Sequence record: NC_061450.1
DNA: 64,000 nt
Direction: 5' to 3' (one strand)
Position 1 is the stretch's first letter, and each line of letters begins with the position of its first letter. Position numbers and translations under genes: made by a program. The notes under the pieces are model-generated. The model had not been told where the DNA came from. It searched no databases and saw only the letters and a list, made by a program, of their open reading frames with translations. Positions 5,290 to 32,157 of the stretch are shown here, piece after piece.

Positions 5290-5296
5290 GGTTCCG

Positions 5297-12042: not shown

Positions 12043-12807
12043 ATGAGCAACATTGATAAAACAATGCCACAAGGCAAATGGGAATTTGATGAAAACGTTG
12101 CCTGCGTGTTTGATAACATGCTGCAAAACAGTATTCCAAGCTATGACCGTATGCGTGAGCTTACCCACTTCTTGGGTCGTCGCTTTGTAACTCCAGGCAC
12201 TGCCATAGTTGACCTGGGTGCATCGTTGGGTCGTGCTATCGAGCCGTTTGCTCGTGAGTTTGGTGCGCCTCGTGGTGAGCAGAACGGTGACCATGTTCGT
12301 TCGTGTGGTAACTACTACAGCCTGTATGAAGTAGCTCCTGCCATGCGTGAGCGTCTTGAAAAGAACCCATTGCTCCAAGCAGTGCAGGCCGAACTCAGTG
12401 ACTATAGCCTGACGGATGTTGACTCGTTCAAACTCAACGATGGAAAAATCGATTGTTCGTTGATTCTCAGCGTGTTAACTCTCCAGTTCACGCCCATCGA
12501 ACACCGCCAACACATCCTCGAGACCGTGTATGACTCGCTACAGCCTGGTGGCGCATTCATCTTGGTAGAGAAAGTGTTGGGCGATGACAACTTCCTTGAT
12601 CGTATGCTGGTCGATACCTATTATGGCATGAAAGGCGGCAACGGTTACTCGGCTGAATCTATCGCTGCTAAGCGCAAGTCACTTGAAGGCGTGCTGGTTC
12701 CAGTTAAAGCCGCATGGAATGAAGAACTGTTGCGCAAGACAGGCTTCAAACGTGTTGAGTGTTTCTATCGTGACCTGAATTTCGCAGGCTGGATTGCAGT
12801 CAAATAA
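12043..12807 (+). CDS. cmoA: carboxy-S-adenosylmethionine synthase (CmoA-like)
   Basis: Collinear with E. coli CmoA: WEFDENVACVFDNM, SIPSY, VDLGASLG, LTLQF, LQPGGAFILVEK, NGYS..I..KRxxLE with the conserved Arg, ECFY..LNF. Confidence 0.9.
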   Translation: MSNIDKTMPQGKWEFDENVACVFDNMLQNSIPSYDRMRELTHFLGRRFVTPGTAIVDLGASLGRAIEPFAREFGAPRGEQNGDHVRSCGNYYSLYEVAPAMRERLEKNPLLQAVQAELSDYSLTDVDSFKLNDGKIDCSLILSVLTLQFTPIEHRQHILETVYDSLQPGGAFILVEKVLGDDNFLDRMLVDTYYGMKGGNGYSAESIAAKRKSLEGVLVPVKAAWNEELLRKTGFKRVECFYRDLNFAGWIAVK

Positions 12808-12854
12808 AACCTTCGGTGGCTTATTGCTGCCCCTGTTAGTTTAAGGAAAACCTA

Positions 12855-13736
12855 ATGGCTAACCGTCAACAGCGCTGTGCTCAAATGATACGCGAGTCAC
12901 TAATCAACGAAATCAAAAAGGCTCGCAGCAAACGTCCTTATGTATTCCTCAGCGGTGGAGTTGATTCTAACTGCATCCTGTTTGCAGCACTTGAAGCAGG
13001 CACGCGTCCGATCACGCTTAGCTTCCACATGGAAGGCGTTAACAGCCGTGACTTCCGAGCAGCACAACGCACGGCACAACACTTTGGTCTGGAGTTTATT
13101 GAGGTTGTGTTGCCATCAGATCCAGACCGTCTGAAAAGCGACGTGCTGACAATGGCTGAACGCTATAAGTGCGTGCAGAAAAACGAGTTTGAATGTAGCT
13201 GGCCAATGCTGTACAGCTTCTTCCACGTTAAACGCCATGCAGAAGCCGCAGGTATCAAACGTCCTGTGACGTTCACGGGCCAAGGTGCTGACTTGATGTA
13301 CCTCAGCAGCAAGAAAGCCAGCATTCACTACAAAGATCGTCCTGATGTTTGGCGCAAAGAAGGTCGCGCTAACCCACACCGCACTCAGGGTCGTATCTTA
13401 CCTCTGATGGCTCAAGATGCTGGTGTGCGCAACATCAAGCCTTGGGACAGCGAAGAAATCCTTGATGCGTTTCTTGGCACCAGCTGGGAAGACGTAAACA
13501 AGCCACGCCAGAAAGAACCTTCGCGCATGGCGTTTGAAGATTACTTCCAGCAGATTCGCGTATACAACCATCAAAACTTCCAGCTGGGTGATACCAAGAT
13601 TGCAGAGCACTTTGAGCAACTACTGGATGACCCTAAGTTCAACCCAGATAATCGTTACAAGTCTGTGGTGGGCGTATACAACGAACTCGCACGCCGCTTT
13701 GGCAACGAGATTCCTCAACAAGAAGAAGACGAATAA
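12855..13736 (+). CDS. asparagine-synthetase-like ATP-dependent amide ligase lacking glutaminase domain (CmoY-like candidate)
   Basis: PP-loop FLSGGVDS, DFRAAQRTAQHFG, TFTGQGAD (cf. AsnB SGEGAD); 293 aa with no N-terminal Ntn domain. Confidence 0.8.
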   Translation: MANRQQRCAQMIRESLINEIKKARSKRPYVFLSGGVDSNCILFAALEAGTRPITLSFHMEGVNSRDFRAAQRTAQHFGLEFIEVVLPSDPDRLKSDVLTMAERYKCVQKNEFECSWPMLYSFFHVKRHAEAAGIKRPVTFTGQGADLMYLSSKKASIHYKDRPDVWRKEGRANPHRTQGRILPLMAQDAGVRNIKPWDSEEILDAFLGTSWEDVNKPRQKEPSRMAFEDYFQQIRVYNHQNFQLGDTKIAEHFEQLLDDPKFNPDNRYKSVVGVYNELARRFGNEIPQQEEDE

Positions 13737-14386
13737 TGCTGATTAATATCTTTGACGTCCGCCAGATTGCGGGTCACACAGCAAAACTGCTTGAGCGTGC
13801 AGGCCACACTGTTAACATCCACCAGCCGATGAATCGCATCAGTGATTCAGGGCGTGAGTTTAATCATCCACAGACAATCACCTGCATGGGCGATAGCCTG
13901 AACAGGAAAGATGTGGTTGAACGTGCTTTGACCTACTGTCTGCAAAGCAATCGCGCACTGTGGTTGGTACCCAGCGTTAGCGCCAGTGTTGTGGGTCGTG
14001 ATATGCTTGACCTAGGCGGCAACAGTGAGAACATCATCTTTTGTGAACCGCCTCTGTACAACACGGATAAAATCATTGGCAGCACCTTGACCATTGATTC
14101 TACGCGCCGTGCTCAGCAGATCGCTCGTATTCGCGGCAATGATGTTGGCCATATTTACTCAGAGCTGGTGGCAGATGACGGTCTGATTCACCTGTGTGGA
14201 TTGGCCCTGCAAGACAGCATGTTCCGCGACAATGCACGCATTCGCTTTAAAGAAGCCACAAAAGGTGGAGCGTATCTCGCCAGTAGTGTGCTGGTGGCCT
14301 ATGCCAACTTCTTTGGCTTTACTTCACAACAACGTCCTGACTATGTGCAACTGGTAGCAGACTTTGTGGCCAAAAGGAACGCGTAA
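13736..14386 (+). CDS. hypothetical protein, possible degenerate prephenate-dehydrogenase fold
   Basis: TAATG-coupled to the ligase; QIAGHTAKLLERAGHTVNI, VPSV, CEPPL, GLIH, SS...G...QRP align by eye with TyrA motifs. Confidence 0.45.
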   Translation: MLINIFDVRQIAGHTAKLLERAGHTVNIHQPMNRISDSGREFNHPQTITCMGDSLNRKDVVERALTYCLQSNRALWLVPSVSASVVGRDMLDLGGNSENIIFCEPPLYNTDKIIGSTLTIDSTRRAQQIARIRGNDVGHIYSELVADDGLIHLCGLALQDSMFRDNARIRFKEATKGGAYLASSVLVAYANFFGFTSQQRPDYVQLVADFVAKRNA

Positions 14387-14622
14387 TGCTGGCATTCATC
14401 GCCTGTGTGTTTTATGCAGTGTACTGTATCTGCTTTGTATTGTGTGTTGTGTTCACCTCATTAGTGCTTGACCCACAAAAGATGATGGGCTTTGGTGCTA
14501 TGATGGACCAAGAGCTGGACAAGCACGGTCCAGACTTCTTTCACAAGGTCTTGATTCCAGTCATTGGTGGAGCAACTCTCTTGTTCAAGTTGTTGTATAT
14601 TGTATGCTGGCATTACGCATAA
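14386..14622 (+). CDS. small membrane protein
   Basis: Two hydrophobic segments; coupled start. Confidence 0.6.
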   Translation: MLAFIACVFYAVYCICFVLCVVFTSLVLDPQKMMGFGAMMDQELDKHGPDFFHKVLIPVIGGATLLFKLLYIVCWHYA

Positions 14623-14631
14623 GGAGCAAAG

Positions 14632-14877
14632 GTGAATCCAGTGATAGACGGATTAGTAGCAGCAGTCTTGGGCTATGTGGGCAAAGTTTTTATCGTCTTG
14701 TGTCTGTTTAGTCTCGTGTTGCTGTTGGCTGTTGAATACAAATTGGGTGCAGCACTTATTCCAGTTGATGATAGCATCCACAGACTACGTGTTTTTGCTT
14801 TGGTATGGCTGGGCAAAGGTTGCTTGATGGTAATCGCCTCAGATGTGCTTAGTGGCACATTCAAGTGGAGGAAATAG
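14632..14877 (+). CDS. small membrane protein
   Basis: GTG start, RBS AAGGAG; two hydrophobic segments. Confidence 0.6.
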   Translation: MNPVIDGLVAAVLGYVGKVFIVLCLFSLVLLLAVEYKLGAALIPVDDSIHRLRVFALVWLGKGCLMVIASDVLSGTFKWRK

Positions 14878-15140
14878 TGATTAACATTTTCCGTATGAAG
14901 AAAACTCCGACCATTAAGGCTTGTCAATGGAACGGAGAGAACCACGAAGAAATCGAAGACTTTATCGGCGACGCTGGTCACATTCAAGGTCGCTATGTTA
15001 TGCTTGGTGCAGTTGACCAGTGGGGCAAGCCTACTATTCTCAATGTCAGCGTAGGCAACTATGTTGTGCAGACAGAAGATGGCAAGTTTTGTGGTATGCT
15101 GATCACCGAGCTGTTTGACCTTTACGTGCTGGAGGATTGA
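14877..15140 (+). CDS. conserved phage protein (A.QW.G.N / V..G.Y.V...G.F family)
   Basis: GTG at 14877 with GGAGG RBS; IKACQWNGEN, VGNYVVQTEDGKF. Confidence 0.65.
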   Translation: MINIFRMKKTPTIKACQWNGENHEEIEDFIGDAGHIQGRYVMLGAVDQWGKPTILNVSVGNYVVQTEDGKFCGMLITELFDLYVLED

Positions 15141-15392
15141 ATGACAGAGAAAACTACTCGTTGGGTTCCTGTGCTGGAACTCAAAATTGAAGGTGATGAT
15201 GCCGTAGCTGCAAACGCCTTGTATGCCAAAATCGTAGACGCGCTTGACAGCGTTGGTGTTATTGTTGAACACAAAGACGCGGCCGCATGGCAAGTTCTTG
15301 CTCAGGAAGGTCGTACTGACCCGATGGACGCTGATGACCTTCTGGATGAGATCAGTCCTGTTGTGCAAATCTCCTGCACGGTACAAAGCTGA
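15141..15392 (+). CDS. hypothetical protein
   Basis: RBS GGAGG; abuts neighbours. Confidence 0.6.
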   Translation: MTEKTTRWVPVLELKIEGDDAVAANALYAKIVDALDSVGVIVEHKDAAAWQVLAQEGRTDPMDADDLLDEISPVVQISCTVQS

Positions 15393-15814
15393 TGGAAAAG
15401 GTCAAAGTATCAAGCACGCAGTGTCCTGATTTCGTTGAAGGTGGTATTGCCTATTGGGAGCGCAGCGAAGACCCATTCCACGTCAAAGCATATCCCAAGA
15501 CTATCAAGCATCTTGCACCACGTCAGATAGGCAAACGTAAAGCAGGCTGGATGGCTATCGACGGCAGTGAGAATGCAATTGGCTTTGTTGCTGATGGCGA
15601 AGTTGTCAAGTCAGAAGGCATTCAGTGGATGACGTATCAGGGACCATTTGATCGCCCTGTGTGCATACCTCTCGCTGAAACCAGCATTCGCACAATCGAG
15701 TTCCACTGCAAGATGGCCAAAGAGCGCAAGCGCAAGAACCTTGCAGTTGTCGAACGTCAAACAGGACTTGTCGATCAAGCAGTGGCAATCGTCAAACGCA
15801 TAATCTGTAAATAA
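15392..15814 (+). CDS. hypothetical protein
   Basis: Coupled start; 140 aa. Confidence 0.6.
   Translation: MEKVKVSSTQCPDFVEGGIAYWERSEDPFHVKAYPKTIKHLAPRQIGKRKAGWMAIDGSENAIGFVADGEVVKSEGIQWMTYQGPFDRPVCIPLAETSIRTIEFHCKMAKERKRKNLAVVERQTGLVDQAVAIVKRIICK
15805..15813 (+). promoter_or_regulatory. CTGTAAATA putative phage promoter
   Basis: About 30 nt upstream of 15845 ATG. Confidence 0.55.
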
Positions 15815-15844
15815 CACGTAGGCAAACAAGTTAAAGGCAGAGTC

Positions 15845-16300
15845 ATGAGTCCCTTAGCAATTTTAAAGGCACAGGTTAAACGTTCGTTGGTTGGAGAAGC
15901 CAACTACGATCCCGAAGTACGCGAACTGTTTGATTGGCGATTCGTTGCCAACGTTGGCGGAAAGCAGTATCTGGTTGGCAAGACTGGCGCTAACACCGTG
16001 TACTATCAAACGCCAGACATGGACCAACCCGCTCCGTGTTACCCTTCTGATATTGAAGGTATTATCGATAGTTGGAGCAAGGCCAAATACCTCAGCTTCT
16101 TTATCTGCCATAAAAAGTTTGATAACATCAAGCTGGACAACATCAAGACAATTGAAGATGCTCTCCAGAAGGTTCCAAAGACCTTCCACGACAAGACCTT
16201 CATTGCTGGTGTAACACCAAAAGGCAAGCGTCACAAACTGTATGTGTTGCAGGCGGGCTTGCGTGGCAATACCTGGGTACCGTTGAAGGAGCAGGATTAA
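15845..16300 (+). CDS. hypothetical protein
   Basis: 151-aa ORF. Confidence 0.6.
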   Translation: MSPLAILKAQVKRSLVGEANYDPEVRELFDWRFVANVGGKQYLVGKTGANTVYYQTPDMDQPAPCYPSDIEGIIDSWSKAKYLSFFICHKKFDNIKLDNIKTIEDALQKVPKTFHDKTFIAGVTPKGKRHKLYVLQAGLRGNTWVPLKEQD

Positions 16301-16632
16301 TGGGCAACAAACTCATAGCTCTGGAAAAAGGGCTTGAAACGGCGCACTTAAAATTAAACGGTGAGTTTGACAACGACCAAGCAATCAATCTGGACTTGGT
16401 TGTTTCCGTGCAGCGTACCTCAACAAATTGCTTCCTGAAAGATACAGGCGTCGGACATGGCAGTCCTTATTCCAACGGTTTGGCGAATCAGGTTGATATC
16501 TTTATACTGCACTTTACGTTGGTTGGTAACGTGCATCGTCGCTGGGTGTTCTTTGAGAATACCCGAAGCACTCGCGACGCAATATTCAACCAAATACTCA
16601 GCCAGGCATACAGCGCGAAAAATGGTGTATAA
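16300..16632 (+). CDS. hypothetical protein
   Basis: TAATG-coupled, RBS AAGGAG. Confidence 0.6.
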   Translation: MGNKLIALEKGLETAHLKLNGEFDNDQAINLDLVVSVQRTSTNCFLKDTGVGHGSPYSNGLANQVDIFILHFTLVGNVHRRWVFFENTRSTRDAIFNQILSQAYSAKNGV

Positions 16633-16637
16633 CACAG

Positions 16638-16663
16638 AGGGTGGCCCCAGGGCTGCCCTTTTT
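16638..16663 (+). terminator. intrinsic terminator
   Basis: AGGGTGGCC-CCAG-GGCTGCCCT then T-run; near-identical copy at 34850. Confidence 0.7.
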
Positions 16664-16680
16664 CGATCTTGTGCAGAAAT

Positions 16681-16689
16681 CTGTAAATA
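16681..16689 (+). promoter_or_regulatory. CTGTAAATA putative phage promoter upstream of dam
   Basis: Follows terminator, about 26 nt before ATG 16716. Confidence 0.6.
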
Positions 16690-16715
16690 ATATAAAACGA
16701 GCTATAGAGAATACT

Positions 16716-17552
16716 ATGCAGTATATCAGCCCTATTCGATACCAGGGATCGAAGCGTAGCCTTATTCCTGTTATCAAGCAACTTGCACCACAAGACTGCA
16801 CCAACATGATTGACGCCTTTGGTGGTTCGGCAACTGTGGTACTCAACATGGATCATCGACGCCGCATGTACTGCGAGTCATATCAGCCTGTGTTTGAGAT
16901 TGTTGATACTCTGGCTAGTGTTGAACCCCATCGAACAGTCAACAAAGTAAAGCGATTGGTTAAGCGTTGGAAACTGGATAAGCACAGCCCTGACAATTTC
17001 TTTAAATTTCGTGACCACGCCAACAGCAGACGTGACCCATTGATGTTTTATATCTTGCATCGCCATGCACATAGCAACCTGTTGCGTTTCAATCAGGACG
17101 GTGAGTACAACGTACCGTTCGGTAAACGTGGCATAGCGGACAATATGGAAGATGTAGAACGTGAAATCTATACCTTCTTTTATAACATGCAGGACGTGCA
17201 ACGAGTCAACGCACGTTATGGTCAGGTGTTGTTGGACAGCAGGTCTAAACTCAACCACAAGACATTCATTTATTTTGATCCTCCTTATCTGGCCAGTGGT
17301 GCCAACTGCTACGATAGTTGGTCCGAGAAATACGAGCACCAGTTGTTGCGTAATCTTGAACGATTGACCGTGATGGGCGTCAAGTGGATGTTAAGCAACG
17401 TCACCCAGCACAGGCATTTTCGCAACGATGTGCTGATCAAGTGGTTAAAGAAGAATAAAATTCGTGTTGTGTATCCGAACAAGACCTATGCATTGGCTAA
17501 CCTGCACGGTGATAGCCACAGCACTGTAGAAATCATTGCAATGAACTATTGA
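16716..17552 (+). CDS. dam: Dam-family (D12 class) N6-adenine DNA methyltransferase
   Basis: RYQGSK, IDAFGGSATV, FNVPFG-like YNVPFG, FIYFDPPY, WMLSN; start moved from 16641 to 16716 because 16641 lies in the terminator. Confidence 0.88.
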   Translation: MQYISPIRYQGSKRSLIPVIKQLAPQDCTNMIDAFGGSATVVLNMDHRRRMYCESYQPVFEIVDTLASVEPHRTVNKVKRLVKRWKLDKHSPDNFFKFRDHANSRRDPLMFYILHRHAHSNLLRFNQDGEYNVPFGKRGIADNMEDVEREIYTFFYNMQDVQRVNARYGQVLLDSRSKLNHKTFIYFDPPYLASGANCYDSWSEKYEHQLLRNLERLTVMGVKWMLSNVTQHRHFRNDVLIKWLKKNKIRVVYPNKTYALANLHGDSHSTVEIIAMNY

Positions 17553-17559
17553 GACACTT

Positions 17560-18255
17560 ATGATAACTGCACAAGACGTATTAAAAACGAATCTGTTCGA
17601 ATTGACTGCCTACTCGGGCTTCCAGCAGTATGTTACTCGCGCCGAAAACAAAGCAGCTATCACCGAAGAAGTTGGTCGCCGCATGGCAGACAGCCTCAAA
17701 TTCGATTACGATAATCTCAAGGCTCTGAACCATTTGCATCTTGCCATTTGCCTAGGCATGCCTAGCTGCTATGCTGAGATCAACATTGTGGCTCAGGGCT
17801 TTATGATGAATGATGTGCATGAAGTCCGAGAAATGTTTGATCCTCTGTTGGACAAAGTGACCGTTATTGACCTGTACGAGCACGGTATAAATATGAGACA
17901 GCATCATGAGCAAAGCTGGTCAGCACGGCGCTTTGTTGATATGGCTGTGTATCTGCATAATACACTGAGTGATCATTTGGATGACCGCACAACTACGTGC
18001 ATTGGTTTTCCAGGCATGCCTAATATGGACCCATTGATTGCGCAGGCCATTGATGTTGCTCAACAGCACATGTTTGTCAACGGTGAGTATCTAGGTGAAC
18101 TGGTACCCGTCGGCTATACTCAGTATCTATATCGCTGTGTGCCTGAGACAAGCAGCAACGGCAATGTCATAATGACCACAAGCAGCGGCACCGTGTATCT
18201 GTCAGGCAGGCCTCAACGCGGCGACACTAACTCTAATCATCTGAGGCCTGTATGA
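17560..18255 (+). CDS. hypothetical protein
   Basis: 231-aa ORF. Confidence 0.6.
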   Translation: MITAQDVLKTNLFELTAYSGFQQYVTRAENKAAITEEVGRRMADSLKFDYDNLKALNHLHLAICLGMPSCYAEINIVAQGFMMNDVHEVREMFDPLLDKVTVIDLYEHGINMRQHHEQSWSARRFVDMAVYLHNTLSDHLDDRTTTCIGFPGMPNMDPLIAQAIDVAQQHMFVNGEYLGELVPVGYTQYLYRCVPETSSNGNVIMTTSSGTVYLSGRPQRGDTNSNHLRPV

Positions 18256-18294
18256 AAATCTCAACGGGATTGATTTTTCCTGGAGATAGCCAAC

Positions 18295-18594
18295 GTGTCT
18301 GAATCTATCAGGTCTAAGCTGGGTGAGTTGATTGTTCAGTTTGAACAGGATATTCATCAGGAAGTGCGAAAACACGGCCCGAGTCCTTACGGTGCTTGGG
18401 GGCCGCTTGCAGATTTAAGTGTGGAAGGCTATCGTAAAGTTATTGTACGACGTGTCCGCAACTCCTACCGTATGCTGTGTCGAGTGCTGGGACTACAGCA
18501 AGGTTATTATGCCTTTCGTCAGTTCTTCTATACCAACTCGACTTTAAAACAAATTGATCAGTTACTCAAGGAACACTATCGTGGCAGAACCTAA
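18295..18594 (+). CDS. hypothetical protein
   Basis: GTG start, RBS GGAG. Confidence 0.55.
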   Translation: MSESIRSKLGELIVQFEQDIHQEVRKHGPSPYGAWGPLADLSVEGYRKVIVRRVRNSYRMLCRVLGLQQGYYAFRQFFYTNSTLKQIDQLLKEHYRGRT

Positions 18595-19213
18595 ACCTAT
18601 TGATGAAATCAACGGCCTACAGTTACGCGAACAAGCAACAGAGTTGGTAAGCTACGCCCTAGAGCTAATGAACCTGGGATTCACTTTACCCATTACTTGG
18701 TGGCGTGACCACATTGTCGAAGACCCAAGCGAAAAGCTAACCCGCCGTCTTACTGTAGATGGTCCTGTGGTACATCGTGCGGCTATCAGCATCTTTGATT
18801 CTTACGACAAGTGCTGTGTGCTTTTGATGAATTACACCAATGCGGCATATGAAAGTTTCTGGCTGGTAATGGATCAAGCGGAGCACCTGCTGTGTAACGT
18901 GATGCGTCCAGGCCGCGTGTTCCAGTTTTCAGAACTGCGTACCAAAGGATCCCTCTCTCGCCACGGGATGCGCATTCTTACCTCAATGCACTTCCTTGTG
19001 TGGGTGAAGCACAGCGGAAGTGATGATATCATGCTTGCGCTGTCTAAATTGCCAAGAGATTGGCACTATGATATTCAAACCAAACCTATTCGTACCAGCT
19101 TTGCTCAGTGGCGCGATCACGTAGGGCGTAATCTTCACATGACTATCATACAAGAGCTGGTAAACAACTATCTGGCCCTCAGAGAGCCTGAACGTTTTGG
19201 AGGTGGTGCATGA
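18581..19213 (+). CDS. hypothetical protein
   Basis: GTG at 18581 with AAGGA RBS. Confidence 0.6.
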   Translation: MAEPKPIDEINGLQLREQATELVSYALELMNLGFTLPITWWRDHIVEDPSEKLTRRLTVDGPVVHRAAISIFDSYDKCCVLLMNYTNAAYESFWLVMDQAEHLLCNVMRPGRVFQFSELRTKGSLSRHGMRILTSMHFLVWVKHSGSDDIMLALSKLPRDWHYDIQTKPIRTSFAQWRDHVGRNLHMTIIQELVNNYLALREPERFGGGA

Positions 19214-20042: not shown

Positions 20043-20319
20043 ACAGCTCTTGAAAAAGCTACAGATGGTTGTGAGTTGCCTGGTCAGCCAGATTGAAGCT
20101 CTGGGCATAATGATTGATCACAAAACAGGTGAACTCAATCACGGTGCTTTGGGTCTGACGATAGGCACGCATAGCGTTGAGTATTGCGTTATGCAGATCG
20201 ATGTGCTGCTAGAGATTCGTCAACGTTTCCAGCGTGAACTCGCCGAACTCAACCAAAACTACGAAAGCCACATTAATCTTTGGGCAGATGGTCTACTTAA
20301 CTCTATGGACGTAACATGA
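20032..20319 (+). CDS. hypothetical protein
   Basis: Probable GTG start at 20032. Confidence 0.5.
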   Translation: MENEQLLKKLQMVVSCLVSQIEALGIMIDHKTGELNHGALGLTIGTHSVEYCVMQIDVLLEIRQRFQRELAELNQNYESHINLWADGLLNSMDVT

Positions 20320-20801
20320 ACGAAAAGAAAGCAGTAGCAATCATGGCGGCCCTGTTTGGTCTGGCCACAATCTCCAACAGCCGTCGGCGTAGCTGTGCAG
20401 CCGCAGTAGTGCGTCTTGTTGAAGGCGTGCCTGTGATGATTGCCACAGGCGTTAACGGTACTTCTCCTGGACACGATAATGTGTGTGAGCCAGAAGACCT
20501 CAGCAGTACCTACCCGCACGTCATTCATGCAGAAGATAACTGTCTGCGTCGTTATACGGCGCTGGGTAATATCAGGCCTGACTTGGACATGCTGTTTGTC
20601 ACAGACAGTCCCTGTGCCGCGTGCTTTGACAAGATTATCGCCTCAAATATTCGTCAGGTGTACTATGCGCGTAGTTACCGCATTCAAGACCACTTGCCAC
20701 TGGCTGAACGTCATGGGCTGGAGTTCGTTGAAGTGGACTTGCAGCAGGTGCGCATGAATCTGATTGAAGCCCACCAGCGCATCGATAAAGTGATCAGCTA
20801 A
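20316..20801 (+). CDS. dCMP deaminase (cytidine/deoxycytidylate deaminase family)
   Basis: TGVNG, IHAE, TDSPCAAC zinc motifs. Confidence 0.88.
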   Translation: MNEKKAVAIMAALFGLATISNSRRRSCAAAVVRLVEGVPVMIATGVNGTSPGHDNVCEPEDLSSTYPHVIHAEDNCLRRYTALGNIRPDLDMLFVTDSPCAACFDKIIASNIRQVYYARSYRIQDHLPLAERHGLEFVEVDLQQVRMNLIEAHQRIDKVIS

Positions 20802-20873
20802 TGTGCCGTGGTGAACGGGGTGAACAAGGCCCAATCGGTGAAAAAGACACAAGTAGGCAACAGGAGAGAAAGT

Positions 20874-22306: not shown

Positions 22307-22312
22307 GATAAT

Positions 22313-22321
22313 CTGTAAATA
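22313..22321 (+). promoter_or_regulatory. CTGTAAATA putative phage promoter
   Basis: Intergenic, about 37 nt before 22359. Confidence 0.6.
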
Positions 22322-22358
22322 CTAATCGCTAATCAACCCCCTGAATACAGAGGATAAC

Positions 22359-22985: not shown

Positions 22986-22993
22986 ACCAAAGT

Positions 22994-23017
22994 GGGTGGC
23001 CTTGTGCCGCCCCTTTT
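22994..23017 (+). terminator. intrinsic terminator
   Basis: GGGTGGC-CTTGT-GCCGCCC then CTTTT. Confidence 0.65.
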
Positions 23018-23030
23018 CAGGAACAAACGT

Positions 23031-25041: not shown

Positions 25042-25357
25042 CGCACTCAAGTATGTGATGTTCATCCGTACAGAAAAGCGCCGTGACGGGATTGAGATTA
25101 AAACTCACCTGCCTGTTATCTTTGCCTCATGCGTGATGCACAGCGATATGGCTGAACGTATGGCTGAGCAGGGTTGGACAGAAGGCCGCCTCGAACGCTA
25201 CGCAGATATTGAAATTCTTCCTGTAAGCGCTGGCTTTATCAGCCTGAGCGACATGCGTTGCTTTGGCGAGTCTGAGTCTCTCGAACTGAAAAGCCGCGTG
25301 GAAGACACAGAGATCATCAAGAACTATCCGATTGATAAAGGAGCCATTGAATGCTAA
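25034..25357 (+). CDS. hypothetical protein
   Basis: 107 aa; SAGF..L....CFGESESL. Confidence 0.6.
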   Translation: MYNALKYVMFIRTEKRRDGIEIKTHLPVIFASCVMHSDMAERMAEQGWTEGRLERYADIEILPVSAGFISLSDMRCFGESESLELKSRVEDTEIIKNYPIDKGAIEC

Positions 25358-25680
25358 CGTGGCTCTACTCCGACGCTGGCTACTGGACAATATACGGCAT
25401 CTTGGTGCTGTTGTGGTTCAGTTATATTCTGCTCGGCGGCCGTGTAAGTAAAAAGACGCGACGCCTAAGCAATGGCCTGTATCTAAACAACATGGTGCCC
25501 AAAGAAGACCGCGAGTACAGGCATCGTTTCCTTCCGTGGAAAAAGTATCAGGTGATTTGCGTTCAGCCTGATACGATGCACGGTCCTGCCTCAGTATTGG
25601 TCCACAAGAAAGGAAAGTACCACTGGTGCAGTGACATTCCTCTGAGTATCTTTAACTCACGCTATAAGGAAGTTAAATAA
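25351..25680 (+). CDS. hypothetical protein with N-terminal TM segment
   Basis: Hydrophobic N-terminus, RBS AAGGAG. Confidence 0.6.
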   Translation: MLTWLYSDAGYWTIYGILVLLWFSYILLGGRVSKKTRRLSNGLYLNNMVPKEDREYRHRFLPWKKYQVICVQPDTMHGPASVLVHKKGKYHWCSDIPLSIFNSRYKEVK

Positions 25681-26336
25681 TGTTTGATAATTGGGATTGG
25701 TCAATTTTCTGGCCTGTATGCTTTTTCGTTTTAGCTATTGCCGGTTACTTCGGTCTGTTGGGATGGTTCGGTGGACGTATGCGTCGCAAACATCAATCAG
25801 AGAGCACTACCAACATCGGTGCCAAGATTCGCACAACGTACAATCTTTGGTACACAAACTCTGTACGTGCAGGTCAAGTATATCGTCACCACAGTGGACG
25901 CGAATACTTGATCGTTAGTATCTTCAATGGCATGTGTGACGATAAAGTCAAATGGCCATTGACTGTTGTATACTGCAATGTCCAAATGACGGCATGGTAT
26001 GCACGCCCACTTTGGCAGTTCCTCGAAGGCTGTCAGCTTAATCGAGAGATCGACAACGATGACTCGATACCACTGATGGACCTTATGGCAATGGCACGCT
26101 TTGATGGCAAAGTCGAAGCAGAGCTACCACAGGCTCAAAGTGTTTGGACACAAGGCGAACCTAGTCAGCCTCACTTGAGAAGGCCAAACGTTGTTGTTAC
26201 ACAGGTCTATAACAAGAATCTGTCTCAACCTATTGTTTCGTATTATGCCATAGGTCGTGAGCACGAGGCACTAGCCTTGCCTCTTTTTGTGTTCCTCAAG
26301 AAATACAGTCCCGTAGCCCAGGAGAAAGCGGCGTGA
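25680..26336 (+). CDS. membrane-anchored DUF1653-like protein
   Basis: TM helix then GQVYRHHSGREY...VVY...WYARP...F. Confidence 0.55.
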   Translation: MFDNWDWSIFWPVCFFVLAIAGYFGLLGWFGGRMRRKHQSESTTNIGAKIRTTYNLWYTNSVRAGQVYRHHSGREYLIVSIFNGMCDDKVKWPLTVVYCNVQMTAWYARPLWQFLEGCQLNREIDNDDSIPLMDLMAMARFDGKVEAELPQAQSVWTQGEPSQPHLRRPNVVVTQVYNKNLSQPIVSYYAIGREHEALALPLFVFLKKYSPVAQEKAA

Positions 26337-27421
26337 GCAAGACATTCGATTTAAAGAACCCACAGCACTTTGCAATGTATCTCATGGAAAGTGTTGATGG
26401 CCAGTACATGCAACTGGTTGAAGCAATTCAGAACTCAGGCACGCTTGAGTTTGACAAGAACCGCACAGAAGATACGTGGCAGACCTTGATTGGTTGTGCC
26501 ATGCAGTTGCACAACACAGCACTGGCGTTCCCTGCGCTGCTCAGCAAGCAAGTAGCATGGAAGCCTGCCGTTGATGAGACGTGCTGGTTCGCTCGTGGTG
26601 AAACCAACATCCGTACTCTCAACAGCAAGATCTGGAATGAGTGGGCAGATGCTGATGGCGAGTGTGGTCCAATCTACGGTGAAATGTGGCGTCGTTGGCC
26701 AGATGTTAAAGTATTGCAACTTCCTAATGCGAACGATGAAAGTCCAGCAGCAGAACGTATCGAGAATGAAGCACAGCGTATGCGCAATGCTGGCTATCGT
26801 GAAACACAACTGCCTGATGGTCGCATGTTGTTTGAAGGTGAGATTGACCAACTGTTGGATGCATTGAATGCCGTGTGTGCGCACTCACGTAGTCGTCGCA
26901 TTAAAGTAGCCACGTATAACCCAGGCTACATTCACATGCAGGCCCTGCCTCCGTGTCACACTAACTTTGAGTTCAACGTGACTCAGGCAACCAACTACGA
27001 ACGCATGGTTGCAGCGGCTGCTGGTCTGCCTGTATATGACAATACTCTGCACCTAACAGCGACCATGAGATCCCAGGACACCCTTTTGGGTAGACCTTTT
27101 AACATCATTGGCTATGCTACGCTGTTGCACTTGTTCGCCAAGTATGCCAAGTTGAACATCGGTGGCTTTACGCTGAACACGACCAACACCCACGTGTATT
27201 CTCATCATTGGGATGCCTTGCGCCAACAGCAGGCACAGTACCAGGAGCTGTTGGAAGAGGTTCGCACTACTGGTCATCCTATGACTTATCCTCAGATGAT
27301 TATCAGTGATGCGATTCACGACATGCAGCCAAAAGAGTTGCTGGACAATCTCAGTCCAGACATGTTTAATCTCGTAGGCTATCAACCCAAGCCTGCCGTT
27401 AAAGGACGCGTAACCAAATGA
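26333..27421 (+). CDS. thyA: thymidylate synthase
   Basis: IWNEW, GPIYGEMWR, SRR, LPPCH, RSQD, GRPFN, HVY. Confidence 0.93.
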   Translation: MSKTFDLKNPQHFAMYLMESVDGQYMQLVEAIQNSGTLEFDKNRTEDTWQTLIGCAMQLHNTALAFPALLSKQVAWKPAVDETCWFARGETNIRTLNSKIWNEWADADGECGPIYGEMWRRWPDVKVLQLPNANDESPAAERIENEAQRMRNAGYRETQLPDGRMLFEGEIDQLLDALNAVCAHSRSRRIKVATYNPGYIHMQALPPCHTNFEFNVTQATNYERMVAAAAGLPVYDNTLHLTATMRSQDTLLGRPFNIIGYATLLHLFAKYAKLNIGGFTLNTTNTHVYSHHWDALRQQQAQYQELLEEVRTTGHPMTYPQMIISDAIHDMQPKELLDNLSPDMFNLVGYQPKPAVKGRVTK

Positions 27422-28062
27422 TGAATCTGCTACTACTTGATGTTTTGCCTGAAGGTTGTGTGATGGTCATGCCTGTCAGTGACACGTCACCTCCTCCGTT
27501 GCATGTTGGCTTTGATGGCGTGTTCTGCGATGGCTACGTTATGCCAAATCTGATCTGTGTTGCCTATGCTGGTATGGGCCGTTTTGTTGCGCGTCAGTCC
27601 ACAGGCAAATTTCATCTGACTCATCTGGCCATTGTTTGCGGTGATGCAGAACATACGCTGAGAACAATCAAGAAAGCCTGTGCGCGTCAGGTTGAAAAAG
27701 ATCGCCGTACGCGCATTGTTCGCCTCAACCGCATGATGGTCGAAGAACTGGACCGCGCCGAAATCAAGCACCCTGAATGGACTTCTGACGCTGTACACGC
27801 TGCGGGTATCCTGGCAGAAGAAAGCGGTGAAGCAATGCAGGCTGCTGTTGATTTTAACGCCACAGGGGATCGTGATAACTTGGTCTGCCTTGAATCCGAA
27901 ACGATTCAAACGGGCGCTATGTGTCTACGCCTGCTGCTTAATCTGCAAGAGTTCCGTCAGCCGATTGATGCGCGTACCGTGTCTCAGATTCTTAGCGACA
28001 GCCTGCTGGACGATGCGGCTAAACTCAAACTGATTCAAAAACTCATTCAGGGGCAACCATGA
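27418..28062 (+). CDS. MazG-like NTP pyrophosphohydrolase domain protein
   Basis: EELDRAEIKHP...LAEESGE...ETIQTGAM. Confidence 0.65.
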   Translation: MMNLLLLDVLPEGCVMVMPVSDTSPPPLHVGFDGVFCDGYVMPNLICVAYAGMGRFVARQSTGKFHLTHLAIVCGDAEHTLRTIKKACARQVEKDRRTRIVRLNRMMVEELDRAEIKHPEWTSDAVHAAGILAEESGEAMQAAVDFNATGDRDNLVCLESETIQTGAMCLRLLLNLQEFRQPIDARTVSQILSDSLLDDAAKLKLIQKLIQGQP

Positions 28063-28931
28063 AAGGTCTGTGCACCAAAATCATCAAGCACCACGCCTTG
28101 CCTGAGCATGGCGTTGAAGGCTATCCGACGTATGAGATCATCGCCGAGCTGAACTATCCAATTGAAGAAGGTGAGCACTCGAATCTGGAACTCAACGACG
28201 TTCTGACTCTGCGTGATGTTCGTGTTGATCTCATCAACCCAGGCACATACAGCCTTGCGTTTGAACTCGATCAGCAGGACGATGCCGAGCAAGGTAACTA
28301 TATCATGGATGCCTTGGCTGCAATGCAGTACGCACAGCACGGCTTCTTGCCTGTGCAGCACGTCATTGATACCATGCGTGAGCGTATCAGAAGCGTTGTG
28401 CCTGACGGCATTCAGATCAGTGTGGAATTGGACCAAGGCATTGTTTCTGTAACGGTGGGCGGTTCTGCTACAAAAATGCCACTGGGCGTTGTGTACACCC
28501 AGCATTTGTTGACAGGCCCGATGGTGTACTCATGGGCTAACAACGAATTGCGTTTGAACCACAACATGCCGCCAGTTCACATGGTGGAACAGTGGTTTGT
28601 TATGCACAATCAGATGCTGCGTGATAACATTGAAGACCTGCCTGATGTTGCTGCTTGCTGCCTTGTGTGTTTAGGTAATGGTGCTGATGGACGCTTGCAT
28701 TATGCCTATGCAGTTGCGATGATGGACGGTAGCTTTACAACAACACCGATGAACATCGGACAGATCATCTGCATGGTCAATACAGGCAAATGTCCCGAAG
28801 TTGAGATTGTGCCTGCTGAGGGCGGTAACGGTATCAATCTCAGCCTTCTCAATGATGAACTCCTGCCAGAAGCCTTAACCCACCTCGACGCAATTACTGA
28901 TTACCAGCTTGGCCTGACAGCCCGCCTTTAG
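28059..28931 (+). CDS. hypothetical protein
   Basis: 290-aa ORF. Confidence 0.6.
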   Translation: MKGLCTKIIKHHALPEHGVEGYPTYEIIAELNYPIEEGEHSNLELNDVLTLRDVRVDLINPGTYSLAFELDQQDDAEQGNYIMDALAAMQYAQHGFLPVQHVIDTMRERIRSVVPDGIQISVELDQGIVSVTVGGSATKMPLGVVYTQHLLTGPMVYSWANNELRLNHNMPPVHMVEQWFVMHNQMLRDNIEDLPDVAACCLVCLGNGADGRLHYAYAVAMMDGSFTTTPMNIGQIICMVNTGKCPEVEIVPAEGGNGINLSLLNDELLPEALTHLDAITDYQLGLTARL

Positions 28932-28970
28932 TCAGTAATTTCCTGAACATGGTAATTTCAGGAGGCAACT

Positions 28971-29303
28971 ATGTCGCAGGATAAAGGTATCCCGTTCATT
29001 CCGTTCAAATCGTTCGAACCAATCGAGCGTCCTTACGGAGCACGATTCTCAAAGACAAGTCACATGCGGGAACTGTTGGTTACCATTGGACAAACAGAAC
29101 AGGTGTTTGAGTTTTCCACTATCGAAATGCAGAGACTGGACGCACCCAGCCTGTTCTACTCTGCATACGATCAACAGGGCCCCATTTTGATCAAGCGCAT
29201 CGCCGTGTTGGGTCTCAAACATCGTGTGTACTTCGAACGTCAGGCTGGCGCGTTTGCGAAAGTCAGAGCTTATTGGGATGTGGTGGACGTGTACTATAAC
29301 TAA
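28971..29303 (+). CDS. hypothetical protein
   Basis: RBS CAGGAGG. Confidence 0.6.
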   Translation: MSQDKGIPFIPFKSFEPIERPYGARFSKTSHMRELLVTIGQTEQVFEFSTIEMQRLDAPSLFYSAYDQQGPILIKRIAVLGLKHRVYFERQAGAFAKVRAYWDVVDVYYN

Positions 29304-29305
29304 AA

Positions 29306-29314
29306 CTGTAAATC
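29306..29314 (+). promoter_or_regulatory. CTGTAAATC putative phage promoter upstream of ParB-methyltransferase pair
   Basis: 8/9 match to motif, intergenic. Confidence 0.5.
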
Positions 29315-29349
29315 TAGATCAGAGATTGGTCTAGCAAAGAGAGTAAGGT

Positions 29350-30042
29350 ATGGCACTGAGTAAGGTCAAAAAAGTAAAAGCTAAAAGCAAAGATCGTGGC
29401 GAACTGGCGGTGTCGTTAAAAGATCTGAAACACGTTAAGCAGTTGCGCAGCGCTGGCTACAACCCACGTATGATTACAGACCGTCGTCTGGCAGACCTTG
29501 AAAAGTCTATCGCATCGTTTGGTGACCTGAGTGGCGTTGTGTTTAACAACAGCGTGAAAAGTGGTGTGCTTGTATCAGGCCACCAGCGTCTTAGCTCTAT
29601 CAAGGGTTGGAAGACGCGTGTTCAGGTTGATGCAGCAACTGATGACCACGGCACTGTGGGTGTAGGCTACATCTTTGCTGAAAGCCCTAAAGGCAAGCAG
29701 GTGCAGATTCCACTGCGTGTGGTAAACTGGTCAGATCGTCGTGCTGAGTATGCAGCAAACATTGCAGCCAACGCACACGGCGGTGAGTTCGATAACAAAA
29801 AGCTGGCTCAGTTGGTTGAGAAGTTGGACATGACCAAGATCCCAGCAGAGATTGTTGGTCTGGACCCTTTGATGCTGCGTGGTCTTAAACAGCGTCTCGC
29901 CAAACAGGGTGAAGATCTTGGCAAGCCGACGCGTACTAACGGCACACAAAACGGCGCCAGTGGTCAGTTCAATGAGGCAACGGTTGATGACATTGAATCA
30001 GATACCGTACACAAATGCCCGCGCTGTAACTTTAAGTTCTAA
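29350..30042 (+). CDS. ParB/Srx-like N-terminal domain protein with C-terminal zinc ribbon
   Basis: YNPRMI, LEKSIASFG, VLVSGHQRL, C-terminal HKCPRCNFKF. Confidence 0.8.
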   Translation: MALSKVKKVKAKSKDRGELAVSLKDLKHVKQLRSAGYNPRMITDRRLADLEKSIASFGDLSGVVFNNSVKSGVLVSGHQRLSSIKGWKTRVQVDAATDDHGTVGVGYIFAESPKGKQVQIPLRVVNWSDRRAEYAANIAANAHGGEFDNKKLAQLVEKLDMTKIPAEIVGLDPLMLRGLKQRLAKQGEDLGKPTRTNGTQNGASGQFNEATVDDIESDTVHKCPRCNFKF

Positions 30043-30051
30043 GGAACAGAT

Positions 30052-32157
30052 ATGCTGATCAAACCACCAAAGATGAAAGAGATTAATGACCTGCCGAAGT
30101 TGTGGTCAGGCATGAGTTTCTTTGCAGGCTGCGGTGGTTCCAGCACGGGTCACAAAATGAGTGGTGTCGATATTCTCGTTTCGAATGAGTTTATCGACAT
30201 TGCTCGTGAGACTTACGCTGCGAACCATCCGACGACCAAAGTTCTTGGGCAGGACATTCGTCGTCTTAGTCCAGATAAAATTCTGAAATACTGCGGGCTG
30301 GCAAAAGGTGAGTTGGACTTGCTTGATGGCAGCCCTCCGTGTTTCCTGCGCGATACCCTGATTCATACTCAGCACGGTATGCGCTACATTGATTCGATTG
30401 AAACAGGCGACATGGTAATGACCCACGAAGGTCGTTATCGTCCTGTTGTTCAACCCATGCGCCGCCCATACAGCGGTCCTCTGCATCGTATTCAGTCCAC
30501 AATCGGACAGAACCACGCAACGCCTGAGCATCCTTTCTATGTCAGACGTTTGGTAAACGGTGTATTGAGTGAAGCACAGTGGGTTGACGCTCGTGAGGTT
30601 CGTGCTGGCGACAAAGTTGCTACGCCTATTGCCACGCCGCGTTGTAGCTATGAGCCTGACATTGCTGCCTTGCGCAAGTGGGGAGAAATCCCAGAGTTCT
30701 GGTGGCTGTGCGGTCATTGGGTGTCTAACGGTTTCATCGAAGCTGTTGGCGGCTATGAGGGCATTCGCTTTATCACGCCAAGCAACGGACGTGTTAACCA
30801 GCTCATGGAACAGGCTCTTGAAACTCTGGGCTTCAACACAATTCAGGTTGCCAAGCAAAACACCAGATACATCGAACGCTTTATGCTGGACGATGACCTG
30901 TGTCAGTTCCTCAAGTTGTTCCTGACTGATAACGAAATGGCGCGTCAGATTCAAGGCTGTGTGTTCCACCTTGATATGTACCTCAAGCGTGAGTTTATCT
31001 ACGGCTTTATGTCGCGTTGCTCAGCCACAAGCTACGGCAAAGCGCTGGTGGTTCAAACTCGCACTGAACGCTTTATGACAGGCATGAAATACCTTATTGC
31101 CTCTGCGTTCGGCAGTCCCCTGTTCGACTTGAGTCCCAACGTTACAACGGAAGAGATTCCAGAGAACTGCTTTACGTTCCGCCGCGATCATCCGTTCTAT
31201 CCAAAAGTTCGTTACACTGCGGTGTTCTATCTGGATGACACTCATCGCGGTTATATCGATGATGAGTCTGCCCACGTGTGGGTTGACGTGTTGGCCAACG
31301 AAGTGTCCGAAGTTGATACAGAGGTGTTTAACTTCTCAGTTGATACGGACGAGACGTACATTGCCAACAACACTGTGGTGCACAACTGCAAAGGCTTTTC
31401 TACTGCAGGTGTGAAGGAAGATGGCTGGGGCAAAGAGGTCAAGTACAGCGACAACGTTTATCAGCAGGTTGATGACCTGTTTGATGAGTTCTGCCGTATG
31501 CTGGGTGGCATGATGCCCAAGGTGTTCACAGCGGAGAATGTTAGCGGTCTGACTAAAGGCATGTCGAAAGGGTACTTCCTGGAAATCATGGCAACGTTTG
31601 ATGCGCTTGGCTATCATGTTCGTGCACCAATGTTGAACAGTAGCTGGCTGGGTGTTCCGCAATCGCGTGAGCGTATCATCTTTATGGGTGTGCGCAAAGA
31701 CATTGCCAAGAAACTCAAACTGCCGGCAAACAGCACCTGTGTGCCAAGTGTTATTCCGCACAAAACACAGACCATGCTGGCAGATGCACTGCCTCACATT
31801 GCAGCCTACAAGTCCACGCAACAGGATTTGATCAAGTACAAGCCTGCAATGAACGGACCCATGCCGACCATCACAGCGGCTGATGCTATTGCCTATGAAA
31901 CAGCGCGGTTCTCATCTGCTGGGTTTATTGAACTGCTTGATGGTACCCGACGCAAGCTGACCATCAATGAACTGCTGGTGGTTAGTGGCATGCCAAGTGA
32001 TTACAAGCTGCTTGGCAAGTTTGAAGAACAATGGGAACGTCTTGGTCGTGTGTGCGTGCCAGCAATGACGCACAACGCATCAAAGGTTTTGATTGAGCAC
32101 ATCTTGATCCCTTACTGCAATGCGATGAAGAAGCGGCCTGGAGAGATTTTCCGATAG
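30052..32157 (+). CDS. C5-cytosine DNA methyltransferase homologue, predicted carboxymethyltransferase (CmoX-like), intein-containing
   Basis: Motifs FAGCGG, GSPP|C, ENV, PQSRER, RKLTINE; motif X reads ERLGRVCVP instead of Q.GNSV.P; spliced length 352 aa. Confidence 0.85.
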   Translation: MLIKPPKMKEINDLPKLWSGMSFFAGCGGSSTGHKMSGVDILVSNEFIDIARETYAANHPTTKVLGQDIRRLSPDKILKYCGLAKGELDLLDGSPPCFLRDTLIHTQHGMRYIDSIETGDMVMTHEGRYRPVVQPMRRPYSGPLHRIQSTIGQNHATPEHPFYVRRLVNGVLSEAQWVDAREVRAGDKVATPIATPRCSYEPDIAALRKWGEIPEFWWLCGHWVSNGFIEAVGGYEGIRFITPSNGRVNQLMEQALETLGFNTIQVAKQNTRYIERFMLDDDLCQFLKLFLTDNEMARQIQGCVFHLDMYLKREFIYGFMSRCSATSYGKALVVQTRTERFMTGMKYLIASAFGSPLFDLSPNVTTEEIPENCFTFRRDHPFYPKVRYTAVFYLDDTHRGYIDDESAHVWVDVLANEVSEVDTEVFNFSVDTDETYIANNTVVHNCKGFSTAGVKEDGWGKEVKYSDNVYQQVDDLFDEFCRMLGGMMPKVFTAENVSGLTKGMSKGYFLEIMATFDALGYHVRAPMLNSSWLGVPQSRERIIFMGVRKDIAKKLKLPANSTCVPSVIPHKTQTMLADALPHIAAYKSTQQDLIKYKPAMNGPMPTITAADAIAYETARFSSAGFIELLDGTRRKLTINELLVVSGMPSDYKLLGKFEEQWERLGRVCVPAMTHNASKVLIEHILIPYCNAMKKRPGEIFR
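30340..31386 (+). mobile_element. intein (349 aa) with LAGLIDADG-type endonuclease remnant
   Basis: Begins CFLRDT, block B ATPEHPFY, WLCGHWVSNG and FIYGFMSRCS remnants, ends VVHN before Cys. Confidence 0.92.

Follow-up and report, generated by a model that had tools for sequence, protein, structure and literature searches.

In Synechococcus phage S-B43, cytosines are hypermodified by the CmoA-CmoX-CmoY pathway (Yang et al., Nat Commun 2025, PMC12783734), in which SpCmoA converts S-adenosylmethionine (SAM) and prephenate into carboxy-SAM (Cx-SAM), SpCmoX, a homologue of cytosine C5 methyltransferases (C5-MTases), makes 5-carboxymethylcytosine (5cxmC) at GC sites, and SpCmoY, which is homologous to asparagine synthetase, attaches glycine to yield 5-glycylcarboxymethylcytosine (5gcxmC), which was found in virion DNA. 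A crystal structure of SpCmoX is available (8YF3); Arg350 of this enzyme takes the place of Asn304 of HhaI and contacts the carboxymethyl group, and the wild-type protein accepts Cx-SAM as its sole donor (PMC12783734). The engineered precedent for such a donor change is the N374K variant of M.MpeI (PMC12783734). Here we describe two loci of Erwinia phage pEa_SNUABM_5, one with the genes gp014, gp015 and gp016 and the other with gp044, gp045 and gp046, which probably encode a cytosine hypermodification pathway of the CmoA/CmoX/CmoY type between them. The DNA analysed, hereafter the window, is the first 64,000 nucleotides (nt) of the phage genome (NC_061450.1), with which both loci are 100% identical at the same coordinates (Table 1).

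The phage is a 267,169-bp jumbo phage of the genus Rivsvirus and its closest sequenced relative is Yoloswag, with ~75% nucleotide identity at the MTase locus. Genes of both loci are also present in Alexandravirus and Sasquatchvirus phages (AD1, Alexandra, Y3 and many pEa_SNUABM phages), and Yersinia phage fHe-Yen9-02 and the more distant Pseudomonas phage PaBG likewise carry the genes discussed here. The overall composition of the pEa_SNUABM_5 system is similar, but distinct, to that of S-B43. Both phages have the same three enzyme families, a CmoX with SPPC and with Arg in place of the motif X Asn, a ligase that lacks a glutaminase domain and adjoins cmoA, and a putative ParBc-type partner, the last being an association that is already published; CmoB is absent. 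In contrast to S-B43, the pEa_SNUABM_5 genes are distributed over two loci ~16 kb apart, the CmoX contains an intein at the catalytic Cys, the ligase belongs to another clade and is accompanied by an additional gene of racemase fold, and the proteins are only 30–38% identical. The phages themselves also differ, a PaBG-like jumbo phage of an enterobacterial plant pathogen standing against a cyanomyovirus.

A first-pass annotation of this DNA, made from the letters without database searches, had proposed that 5cxmC is made and then amidated, by means of Cx-SAM, a CmoX-like MTase and a ligase; this core is well supported by the homology of the predicted proteins to the S-B43 enzymes and by the presence of the defining residues. 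The annotation had pointed to both the cyanophage pathway with its glycine amide and the motif X Asn-to-Lys change that turns M.MpeI into a carboxymethyltransferase, and the published work agrees with it on both counts, the latter being N374K (PMC12783734).

The gp046 gene (30052–32157) encodes a 701-amino-acid (aa) homologue of the C5-MTases whose central part holds Hint domains. The best relative of solved structure is, with a large lead, SpCmoX (8YF3, E-value 1.6e-52), the next being HaeIII (1e-14), and HhaI (1e-7) is matched as well. In a four-sequence alignment of gp046, Yoloswag gp43, AD1 gp048 and SpCmoX, the motifs FAGxGGSSTG, DGSPPC, ENV, QxRER and ERxGR are invariant, and so are the cytosine-contacting residues of gp046, Glu495-Asn496-Val497 and Arg539-Glu540-Arg541. 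Arg666 of gp046, within ERLGR, is aligned with Arg350 of SpCmoX, within ERVGR, and this Arg is conserved in all four sequences; the alignment with HhaI stops at residue 666 of gp046 and residue 304, the motif X Asn, of HhaI. The replacement of GN by GR in motif X that had been noticed from the letters therefore coincides with the SpCmoX R350 and HhaI N304 position. The published survey defines CmoX proteins by the signature 'SPPC plus R350' (PMC12783734), and with Arg666 at the R350 position and an SPPC sequence gp046 has both of these features. As in M.MpeI N374K, the motif X Asn is replaced by a basic residue, which would permit the use of Cx-SAM, although M.MpeI carries an engineered Lys and has CG specificity, whereas gp046 would be a natural Arg variant.

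Both Pfam and NCBIfam assign gp046 to the generic C5-MTases only, as would be expected were it an ordinary SAM-dependent methyltransferase producing 5-methylcytosine (5mC), with CmoA put to another use such as draining host SAM or prephenate or modifying tRNA. We regard such an arrangement as improbable, since an Arg occupies the motif X Asn position, since gp046 is far more similar to SpCmoX than to any 5mC methyltransferase, and since SpCmoX takes Cx-SAM only (PMC12783734). Depletion of SAM by CmoA is raised as a possible side effect in the same paper (PMC12783734) and, together with the 17 kb that separate cmoA from gp046, speaks for the methyltransferase; nevertheless, no CmoB was found in the genome by tblastn at E ≤ 0.01, and PaBG holds the corresponding genes in one cluster, as described below.

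The intein of gp046 extends from Cys97 (CFLRDTLIH...) to Asn445 (...TVVHN) and is followed by Cys446. The residues of a class 1 intein are present, namely Cys97, Thr157-Pro-Glu-His160, His444-Asn445 and the +1 residue Cys446, and the domains Hint_2, PT-HINT and Intein_splicing are detected. Once the intein is removed, DGSPP and CKGFSTAG become contiguous, in agreement with DGSPPCSAFSVAG of SpCmoX. Thus, the intein is located exactly at the catalytic Cys, such that the +1 residue would become the nucleophile of the spliced, 352-aa enzyme, and active CmoX should consequently need protein splicing. The first-pass annotation had spoken of an intein gate: the insert is indeed an intein and splits the catalytic motif, but nothing points to regulated gating. 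The Yoloswag and AD1 proteins carry an intein at this very site, and none is present in the CmoX of PaBG (335 aa). Within the middle ~200 aa of the intein, neither Pfam nor PDB searches recovered an endonuclease family, and by eye we note LAGLIDADG-like strings (LCGHWVSNGF and FIYGFMSRCS) that are devoid of acidic residues, which suggests that a homing endonuclease has decayed and that the intein is now inherited vertically. No paper on an intein in a C5-MTase was found in a literature search judged by titles.

That a 349-aa insertion splits the catalytic motif, and that the endonuclease domain of the intein is not recognisable, could also indicate that gp046 is a decaying, non-functional remnant. 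This is very improbable, given that the 701-aa reading frame is intact, that every residue required for splicing is present, and that gp046 is 78% identical to the Yoloswag protein and 59% identical to that of AD1, with near-identical exteins. We therefore favour a gp046 that matures by splicing into a CmoX.

The donor for this enzyme would be supplied by gp014. Over residues 11–254, gp014 matches both E. coli CmoA (4GEK, E-value 1.2e-30) and H. influenzae YecO (1IM8, 7e-28), and the top NCBIfam family is TIGR00740 (CmoA), with an E-value of 5e-42. The sequence KRKSLE of gp014 is aligned with KRSMLE of 4GEK, which makes Arg211, the Arg of the KRxxLE motif reported at first pass, the counterpart of the carboxylate-binding Arg199, where the equivalence to native E. 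coli numbering depends on a counted 14-residue tag offset of 4GEK. The protein is 30% identical to SpCmoA and carries an insertion near residues 70–95. In bacteria, CmoA acts with CmoB in the tRNA cmo5U34 pathway, and this pathway shares the CmoA chemistry and the Cx-SAM donor with the one proposed here. It differs in that pEa_SNUABM_5 is without CmoB and in that the acceptor would be a DNA cytosine, reached through a C5-MTase homologue. Indeed, the absence of cmoB noticed in the window extends to the complete pEa_SNUABM_5 genome, since a tblastn search with E. coli CmoB of a phage collection that includes it gave no match to this phage at E ≤ 0.01.

The ligase gene gp015 starts 48 nt past the end of cmoA and encodes 293 aa, which match only PF00733 (Asn_synthase, E-value 1.8e-10) and include no glutaminase domain, such that its description as a glutaminase-less Asn-synthetase-like ligase holds. 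A PP-loop, LSGGVDS, is present at residues 32–38. Homology to SpCmoY is full-length, with 34% identity over 264 aa and an E-value of 1e-38. The third gene of this locus, gp016 (216 aa), starts on the final base of the gp015 stop codon, and this 1-nt overlap bears out the coupling of the two genes that had been pointed out from the sequence.

Table 1. Positions of the genes, protein segments and leader elements of the two loci in the window (64,000 nt, first part of NC_061450.1).
Feature	Position	Strand	Remarks
CTGTAAAT promoter-like motif, upstream of cmoA	11971–11978	+	also before cmoA in Yoloswag and PaBG
Leader box ATGGTAATTTCGGGAGG	11989–12005	+	GGTAATT core invariant upstream of cmoA in 7 relatives
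Terminator-like hairpin, then TTTTCG	12000–12020	+	between CTGTAAAT and the cmoA start; conserved in one metagenomic contig and Yoloswag
gp014, CmoA homologue (predicted carboxy-SAM synthase)	12043–12807	+	sequence match; R211 codon 12673–12675, equivalent to EcCmoA R199
gp015, predicted CmoY-like ATP-dependent amide ligase	12855–13736	+	PP-loop SGGVDS; no glutaminase domain; clade A
gp016, accessory protein, Asp/Glu-racemase-like fold (model)	13736–14386	+	Ser80 (13973–13975) and Ser183 (14282–14284) opposite the MurI catalytic Cys residues
Leader box, second copy ATGGTAATTTCAGGAGG	28949–28965	+	22 nt upstream of the gp044 start codon
gp044, 110-aa protein	28971–29303	+	heads the gp044/ParB-like/CmoX block; membership of the system uncertain
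CTGTAAAT promoter-like motif, upstream of the ParB-like gene	29306–29313	+	conserved there in Yoloswag and AD1
gp045, ParB/Srx-like N-domain protein, probable partner of CmoX	29350–30042	+	phrog_620
gp046, CmoX N-extein, aa 1–96	30052–30339	+	motif I; ends ...DGSPP
gp046, intein, aa 97–445 (349 aa)	30340–31386	+	Cys1, TPEH 157–160, terminal HN
gp046, CmoX C-extein, aa 446–701 and stop codon	31387–32157	+	+1 Cys446 is the motif IV catalytic Cys; ENV, QSRER; R666 (32047–32049)
All copies of CTGTAAAT	7487, 10233, 11971, 15805, 16681, 22313, 29306, 33371, 34895, 39095	+	
	62546	-	

The best evidence that both loci belong together comes from PaBG, where gp310–gp305 form one cluster that encodes, in this order, a ParB-like protein, CmoX, CmoA, a protein of 150 aa, the ligase and a protein of 203 aa. 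The four homologous genes in this cluster tie the two window loci to each other, the identities to the window proteins being 42% for the ParB-like protein, 44–52% for CmoX, 40% for CmoA and 42% for the ligase. PaBG resembles pEa_SNUABM_5 in these four core proteins (40–52% identical), in having a ligase of the same clade and in the presence of CTGTAAAT upstream of cmoA; it differs in that all genes stand together, in that CmoX is without an intein and gp016 without a relative, and in its other small genes. The survey of gene neighbourhoods suggested at first pass thus finds the core genes linked in PaBG, and it finds the ~16-kb split kept in Yoloswag and AD1. The split, which had been listed among the additions beyond the published core, is therefore a feature of the clade and not peculiar to pEa_SNUABM_5. 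A Vsr/MutH-family endonuclease gene is present two genes upstream of the ParB-like/CmoX/CmoA/ligase cluster of PaBG (2649–3152 of that locus). Vsr-type enzymes usually accompany cytosine C5 methylases.

The gp045 gene directly precedes gp046, and its product matches phrog_620 with an E-value of 1.1e-29, in agreement with the ParB-like assignment made at first pass; ParB-MTase fusions are also matched, in their N-terminal part. Pfam gave nothing at E ≤ 0.01, and the match to Spo0J is weak (E-value 0.17). The ParB partner had also been put forward as an addition to the core, but it is already contained in the published survey, which recorded 5,615 CmoX proteins and, on the same contigs, 4,257 CmoA proteins, 2,251 ligases and 1,660 ParBc-domain proteins (PMC12783734). 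In Yoloswag and AD1, a gp044 homologue likewise precedes the ParB-like gene, and none is present in the PaBG cluster.

Taken as a whole, we consider it probable that the two loci jointly encode a hypermodification pathway of the CmoA/CmoX/CmoY type. What the analysis shows is homology, conservation of residues, the anatomy of the intein, a fold and the linkage of the genes; the individual chemical steps of the following scheme, the amine and what gp016 does are inferred. Specifically, gp014 would convert SAM and host prephenate into carboxy-SAM, while the 701-aa precursor of gp046 would excise its 349-aa intein and join ...DGSPP to CKGFS..., thereby rebuilding motif IV. The spliced 352-aa enzyme would then act on replicated, double-stranded phage DNA and transfer the carboxymethyl group to the C5 position of cytosine, with Arg666 in place of the motif X Asn holding the extra carboxylate and with ParB-like gp045 probably assisting on the DNA. 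Subsequently, gp015 would adenylate the carboxylate of 5cxmC and form an amide with an amine, and gp016, a diverged protein of Asp/Glu-racemase fold encoded by the last gene of the cassette, would most likely act on the adduct by binding or processing its amino-acid or carboxylate moiety. The purpose of the modification would be to shield the phage DNA from host nucleases.

Which amine is attached may depend on the ligase. Among phages of this clade, CmoA is 70–78% identical to gp014, and the ligase ranges from 25% to 85% identity to gp015. A tree of 12 ligase sequences resolves three clades, where clade A comprises pEa_SNUABM_5, pEa_SNUABM_2, Yen9-02, two metagenomic contigs and PaBG, clade B comprises Yoloswag, Y3 and Salmonella phage Sen-NF, in which a 2-oxoglutarate-Fe(II) (2OG-Fe(II)) oxygenase is always the next gene, and clade C comprises AD1 and pEa_SNUABM_1 and is grouped with SpCmoY. 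In the Sen-NF phage (108 kb), we note the pair of clade-B ligase and 2OG-Fe(II) oxygenase at 4869–6392 of its locus; cmoA and cmoX were not found in the 10.8 kb of this genome that were examined. The survey likewise describes several ligase clusters with differing pockets, and the pocket residues of CmoY appear there as images (PMC12783734). Because the gp015 clade is separate from SpCmoY, the amine used by gp015 is probably not simply glycine.

For gp016, searches of Pfam, PHROGs, NCBIfam, PADLOC and PDB sequences gave nothing significant, the only matches being halohydrin dehalogenases with E-values of 0.5–1.5. The family is tiny, with 8 close relatives by word-based protein search and 5 representative proteins among 1.84 billion in an exhaustive profile search. 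A first AlphaFold2 model, computed from 9 close sequences, was poor (pLDDT 55), and after the addition of 4 distant members the model reached a pLDDT of 87.6 and a pTM of 0.85. When this fold was compared with the PDB using Foldseek, nine matches had E ≤ 0.001, of which eight were glutamate racemases, with aspartate and allantoin racemases next, and the racemase superfamily made up most of the top 50 (best E-value 2.2e-4, probability 1.0, TM 0.54–0.60). In a viral library, the first match outside the family itself is annotated 'Asp/Glu/Hydantoin racemase'.

A paralogue provides a second connection to the racemases. In Yen9-02 and the two metagenomic contigs, an extra gene of ~190 aa is inserted between the ligase and the gp016 homologue; its product contains the motifs VFDSGAGG, ACNTMS and GSTH, matches TIGR00067 (glutamate racemase) at 1.7e-6, and is related to the gp016 profile with a probability of 90% over 175 columns. 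In a joint alignment of the three groups, Ser80 and Ser183 of gp016, both invariant in the family, are positioned opposite the two catalytic Cys residues of MurI, and Asp7 is positioned opposite the Asp of the DSG motif. Thus, gp016 shares with MurI and the Asp/Glu/hydantoin racemase superfamily (PF01177) the two-domain fold, the Asp after strand 1 and both active-site loop positions, but has Ser for both Cys residues, no Pfam match, a shorter chain and a family confined to these phages. According to the model, gp016 has a racemase fold without the thiol pair and is no conventional racemase. PaBG gp305, the 203-aa protein, shows no relationship to the gp016 profile.

The first-pass annotation had taken gp016 for a pseudo-prephenate dehydrogenase, that is, a degenerate protein handling prephenate for CmoA. 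This is hardly credible: the N-terminal strand-helix-strand resembles the start of a Rossmann fold, and nothing else does, the corresponding sequence being FDVRQIAGH without a GxGxxG motif; the Pfam, NCBIfam and PDB sequence searches are empty, the top 50 structural matches are mostly racemases and contain no prephenate dehydrogenase, and the paralogue has the motifs of glutamate racemases. The racemase fold is therefore what we retain for gp016.

The position of gp016 is constant. Relatives of gp016 were seen in 15 viral-contig loci, and in every one of these cmoA is located upstream and the ligase directly upstream, and gp016 is the last gene of the cassette irrespective of the ligase type. 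What lies between varies. The pEa_SNUABM_5 and pEa_SNUABM_2 type is composed of cmoA, a clade-A ligase and gp016, to which Yen9-02 adds the racemase-like paralogue between ligase and gp016. AD1 and Alexandra have cmoA, a DgcN-like gene, a clade-C ligase and gp016, and the pEa_SNUABM_1 type has cmoA, a 420-aa gene, a DgcN-like gene, an Ala_racemase_N-like gene, a clade-C ligase and gp016. In Y3, cmoA is followed by a clade-B ligase, the oxygenase and gp016, and Yoloswag has the same order with the oxygenase as the final gene. The DgcN-like protein is a DUF1611 protein that matches NF041892 at 6e-84, and DgcN is known as a key enzyme in the conversion pathway of D-glutamate, an acidic D-amino acid (PMC12363236). 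The recurrence of enzymes of amino-acid stereochemistry in these cassettes suggests non-glycine amino acids as the adducts, with a configuration that is of relevance.

On this basis we tentatively propose, as a possibility to which we give somewhat less than even weight, that the stretch from cmoA to the next conserved gene is a fast-changing 'adduct cassette', whereby closely related jumbo phages would build chemically different amides on 5cxmC through different ligase clades and helper proteins (racemase-fold, DgcN-like, alanine-racemase-like and 2OG-Fe(II) oxygenases). The adduct of pEa_SNUABM_5 would then be a non-glycine amino acid, possibly an acidic or a D-amino acid, gp016 would be a recruited protein of racemase fold, and the activity of CmoX would be splicing-dependent. 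Another outcome, in which the pathway stops at 5cxmC or yields the S-B43 glycine amide 5gcxmC and gp016 is an unrelated neighbour without a role in modification, would agree with the homology of gp015 to SpCmoY along the whole length and with the absence of gp016 from Yoloswag, PaBG and S-B43. We think it unlikely, however, because gp015, at 33% identity, falls in a clade apart from SpCmoY, which sits with the AD1-type ligases, because gp016 relatives directly follow the ligase in all 15 loci and the start and stop codons overlap in the window, and because the cassettes of relatives hold further genes of amino-acid metabolism (DgcN-like, Ala_racemase_N-like and the glutamate-racemase-like paralogue).

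Several points weigh against the proposed pathway. The TIGR00740 score of gp014 is 144.2 bits, below the equivalog cut-off of 193.3, the splicing of gp046 is a prediction from residues and domains, and a literature search on pEa_SNUABM_5, AD1, Y3 and PaBG yielded neither restriction nor modification data. With respect to gp016, the tie to the racemases consists of the fold and the paralogue; an hhalign comparison of the gp016 profile with five MurI sequences gave a probability of 4%, which is not significant, although it placed Ser80 opposite the first catalytic Cys. Both catalytic Cys residues of the racemases, within the ACNT and GCTH motifs, are Ser in gp016, which renders racemase activity of gp016 doubtful, and the absence of gp016 from the three phages named above indicates that it is not needed for the core pathway.

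The leaders of the two loci share sequence elements at two levels of specificity. The promoter-like motif CTGTAAAT, which the first-pass annotation had placed at 11971 and 29306 and interpreted as a sign of co-regulation, is indeed found at both sites. In the window, however, it occurs 11 times against 2.35 expected, a number reached by none of 100 shuffled sequences. Of the ten plus-strand copies, eight are located ~25–65 nt ahead of gene starts, another falls within the last nucleotides of the gene before it, and the tenth is in a coding region. Many genes of this early region thus have the motif at their start. We note that an A/T-rich stretch usually stands before the motif, CTGTAAAT(A), and that some copies follow a terminator hairpin. 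The motif probably represents a class of promoters in PaBG-like jumbo phages and, being general, marks the transcription class of both loci only, not these two in particular. The argument for co-regulation from this motif is consequently weak. A more specific 17-mer is common to both leaders and adds to the evidence that links the two loci.

This 17-nt pattern, ATGGTAATTTC(G/A)GGAGG, has only two sites in the window, one before cmoA (11989) and one before gp044 (28949), where the test is partly circular since the pattern was derived from these two sites. The GGTAATT core also precedes the gp044 homologue in Yoloswag, and at the gp044 site of the window a half-copy, GTAATTTC, is seen ~15 nt upstream. 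The box may be a shared operator or leader. The hairpin in the cmoA leader comes after CTGTAAAT, whereas elsewhere the hairpin precedes the motif; it may be an attenuator, or merely the terminator of gp013. Rfam contains no family that matches the window or, within it, the cmoA leader.

Between the two loci, further genes of nucleotide metabolism and DNA modification are encountered, namely a D12-class adenine methylase (16716–17552), a dCMP deaminase (20316–20801) and a long thymidylate synthase of 362 aa with an insertion (26333–27421). The last of these was considered as a dCMP hydroxymethylase that would compete for the C5 position, and was dropped on account of a TIGR03284 score of 128.7 bits, above the ThyA cut-off of 108.35. 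The GC skew of the window is positive throughout the first 44 kb and becomes negative (-0.11) at 44000–46000, which probably reflects a changed coding strand.

The core idea and the ParB partner are already published (PMC12783734). New leads come from the intein that interrupts CmoX at its catalytic Cys, from a ligase of a separate clade, from a helper with a racemase fold and from a cassette that is highly variable among relatives that can be cultivated; a search of the text and supplementary material of PMC12783734 found no mention of Erwinia phages, inteins, racemases or oxygenases. For this pathway, a modifying enzyme that needs splicing to become active would, if true, be new, and so would a helper protein of racemase fold. 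The pathway has been shown experimentally in one cyanophage only, and the pEa_SNUABM_5 locus extends it to cultivable jumbo phages of Erwinia, Dickeya and Yersinia. The genomes of near relatives, which differ mainly in the ligase and helper genes, constitute a natural series for the amines attached to 5cxmC, and the same series would lend itself to following the effects of the adducts on restriction, on other defence systems and on sequencing chemistry.

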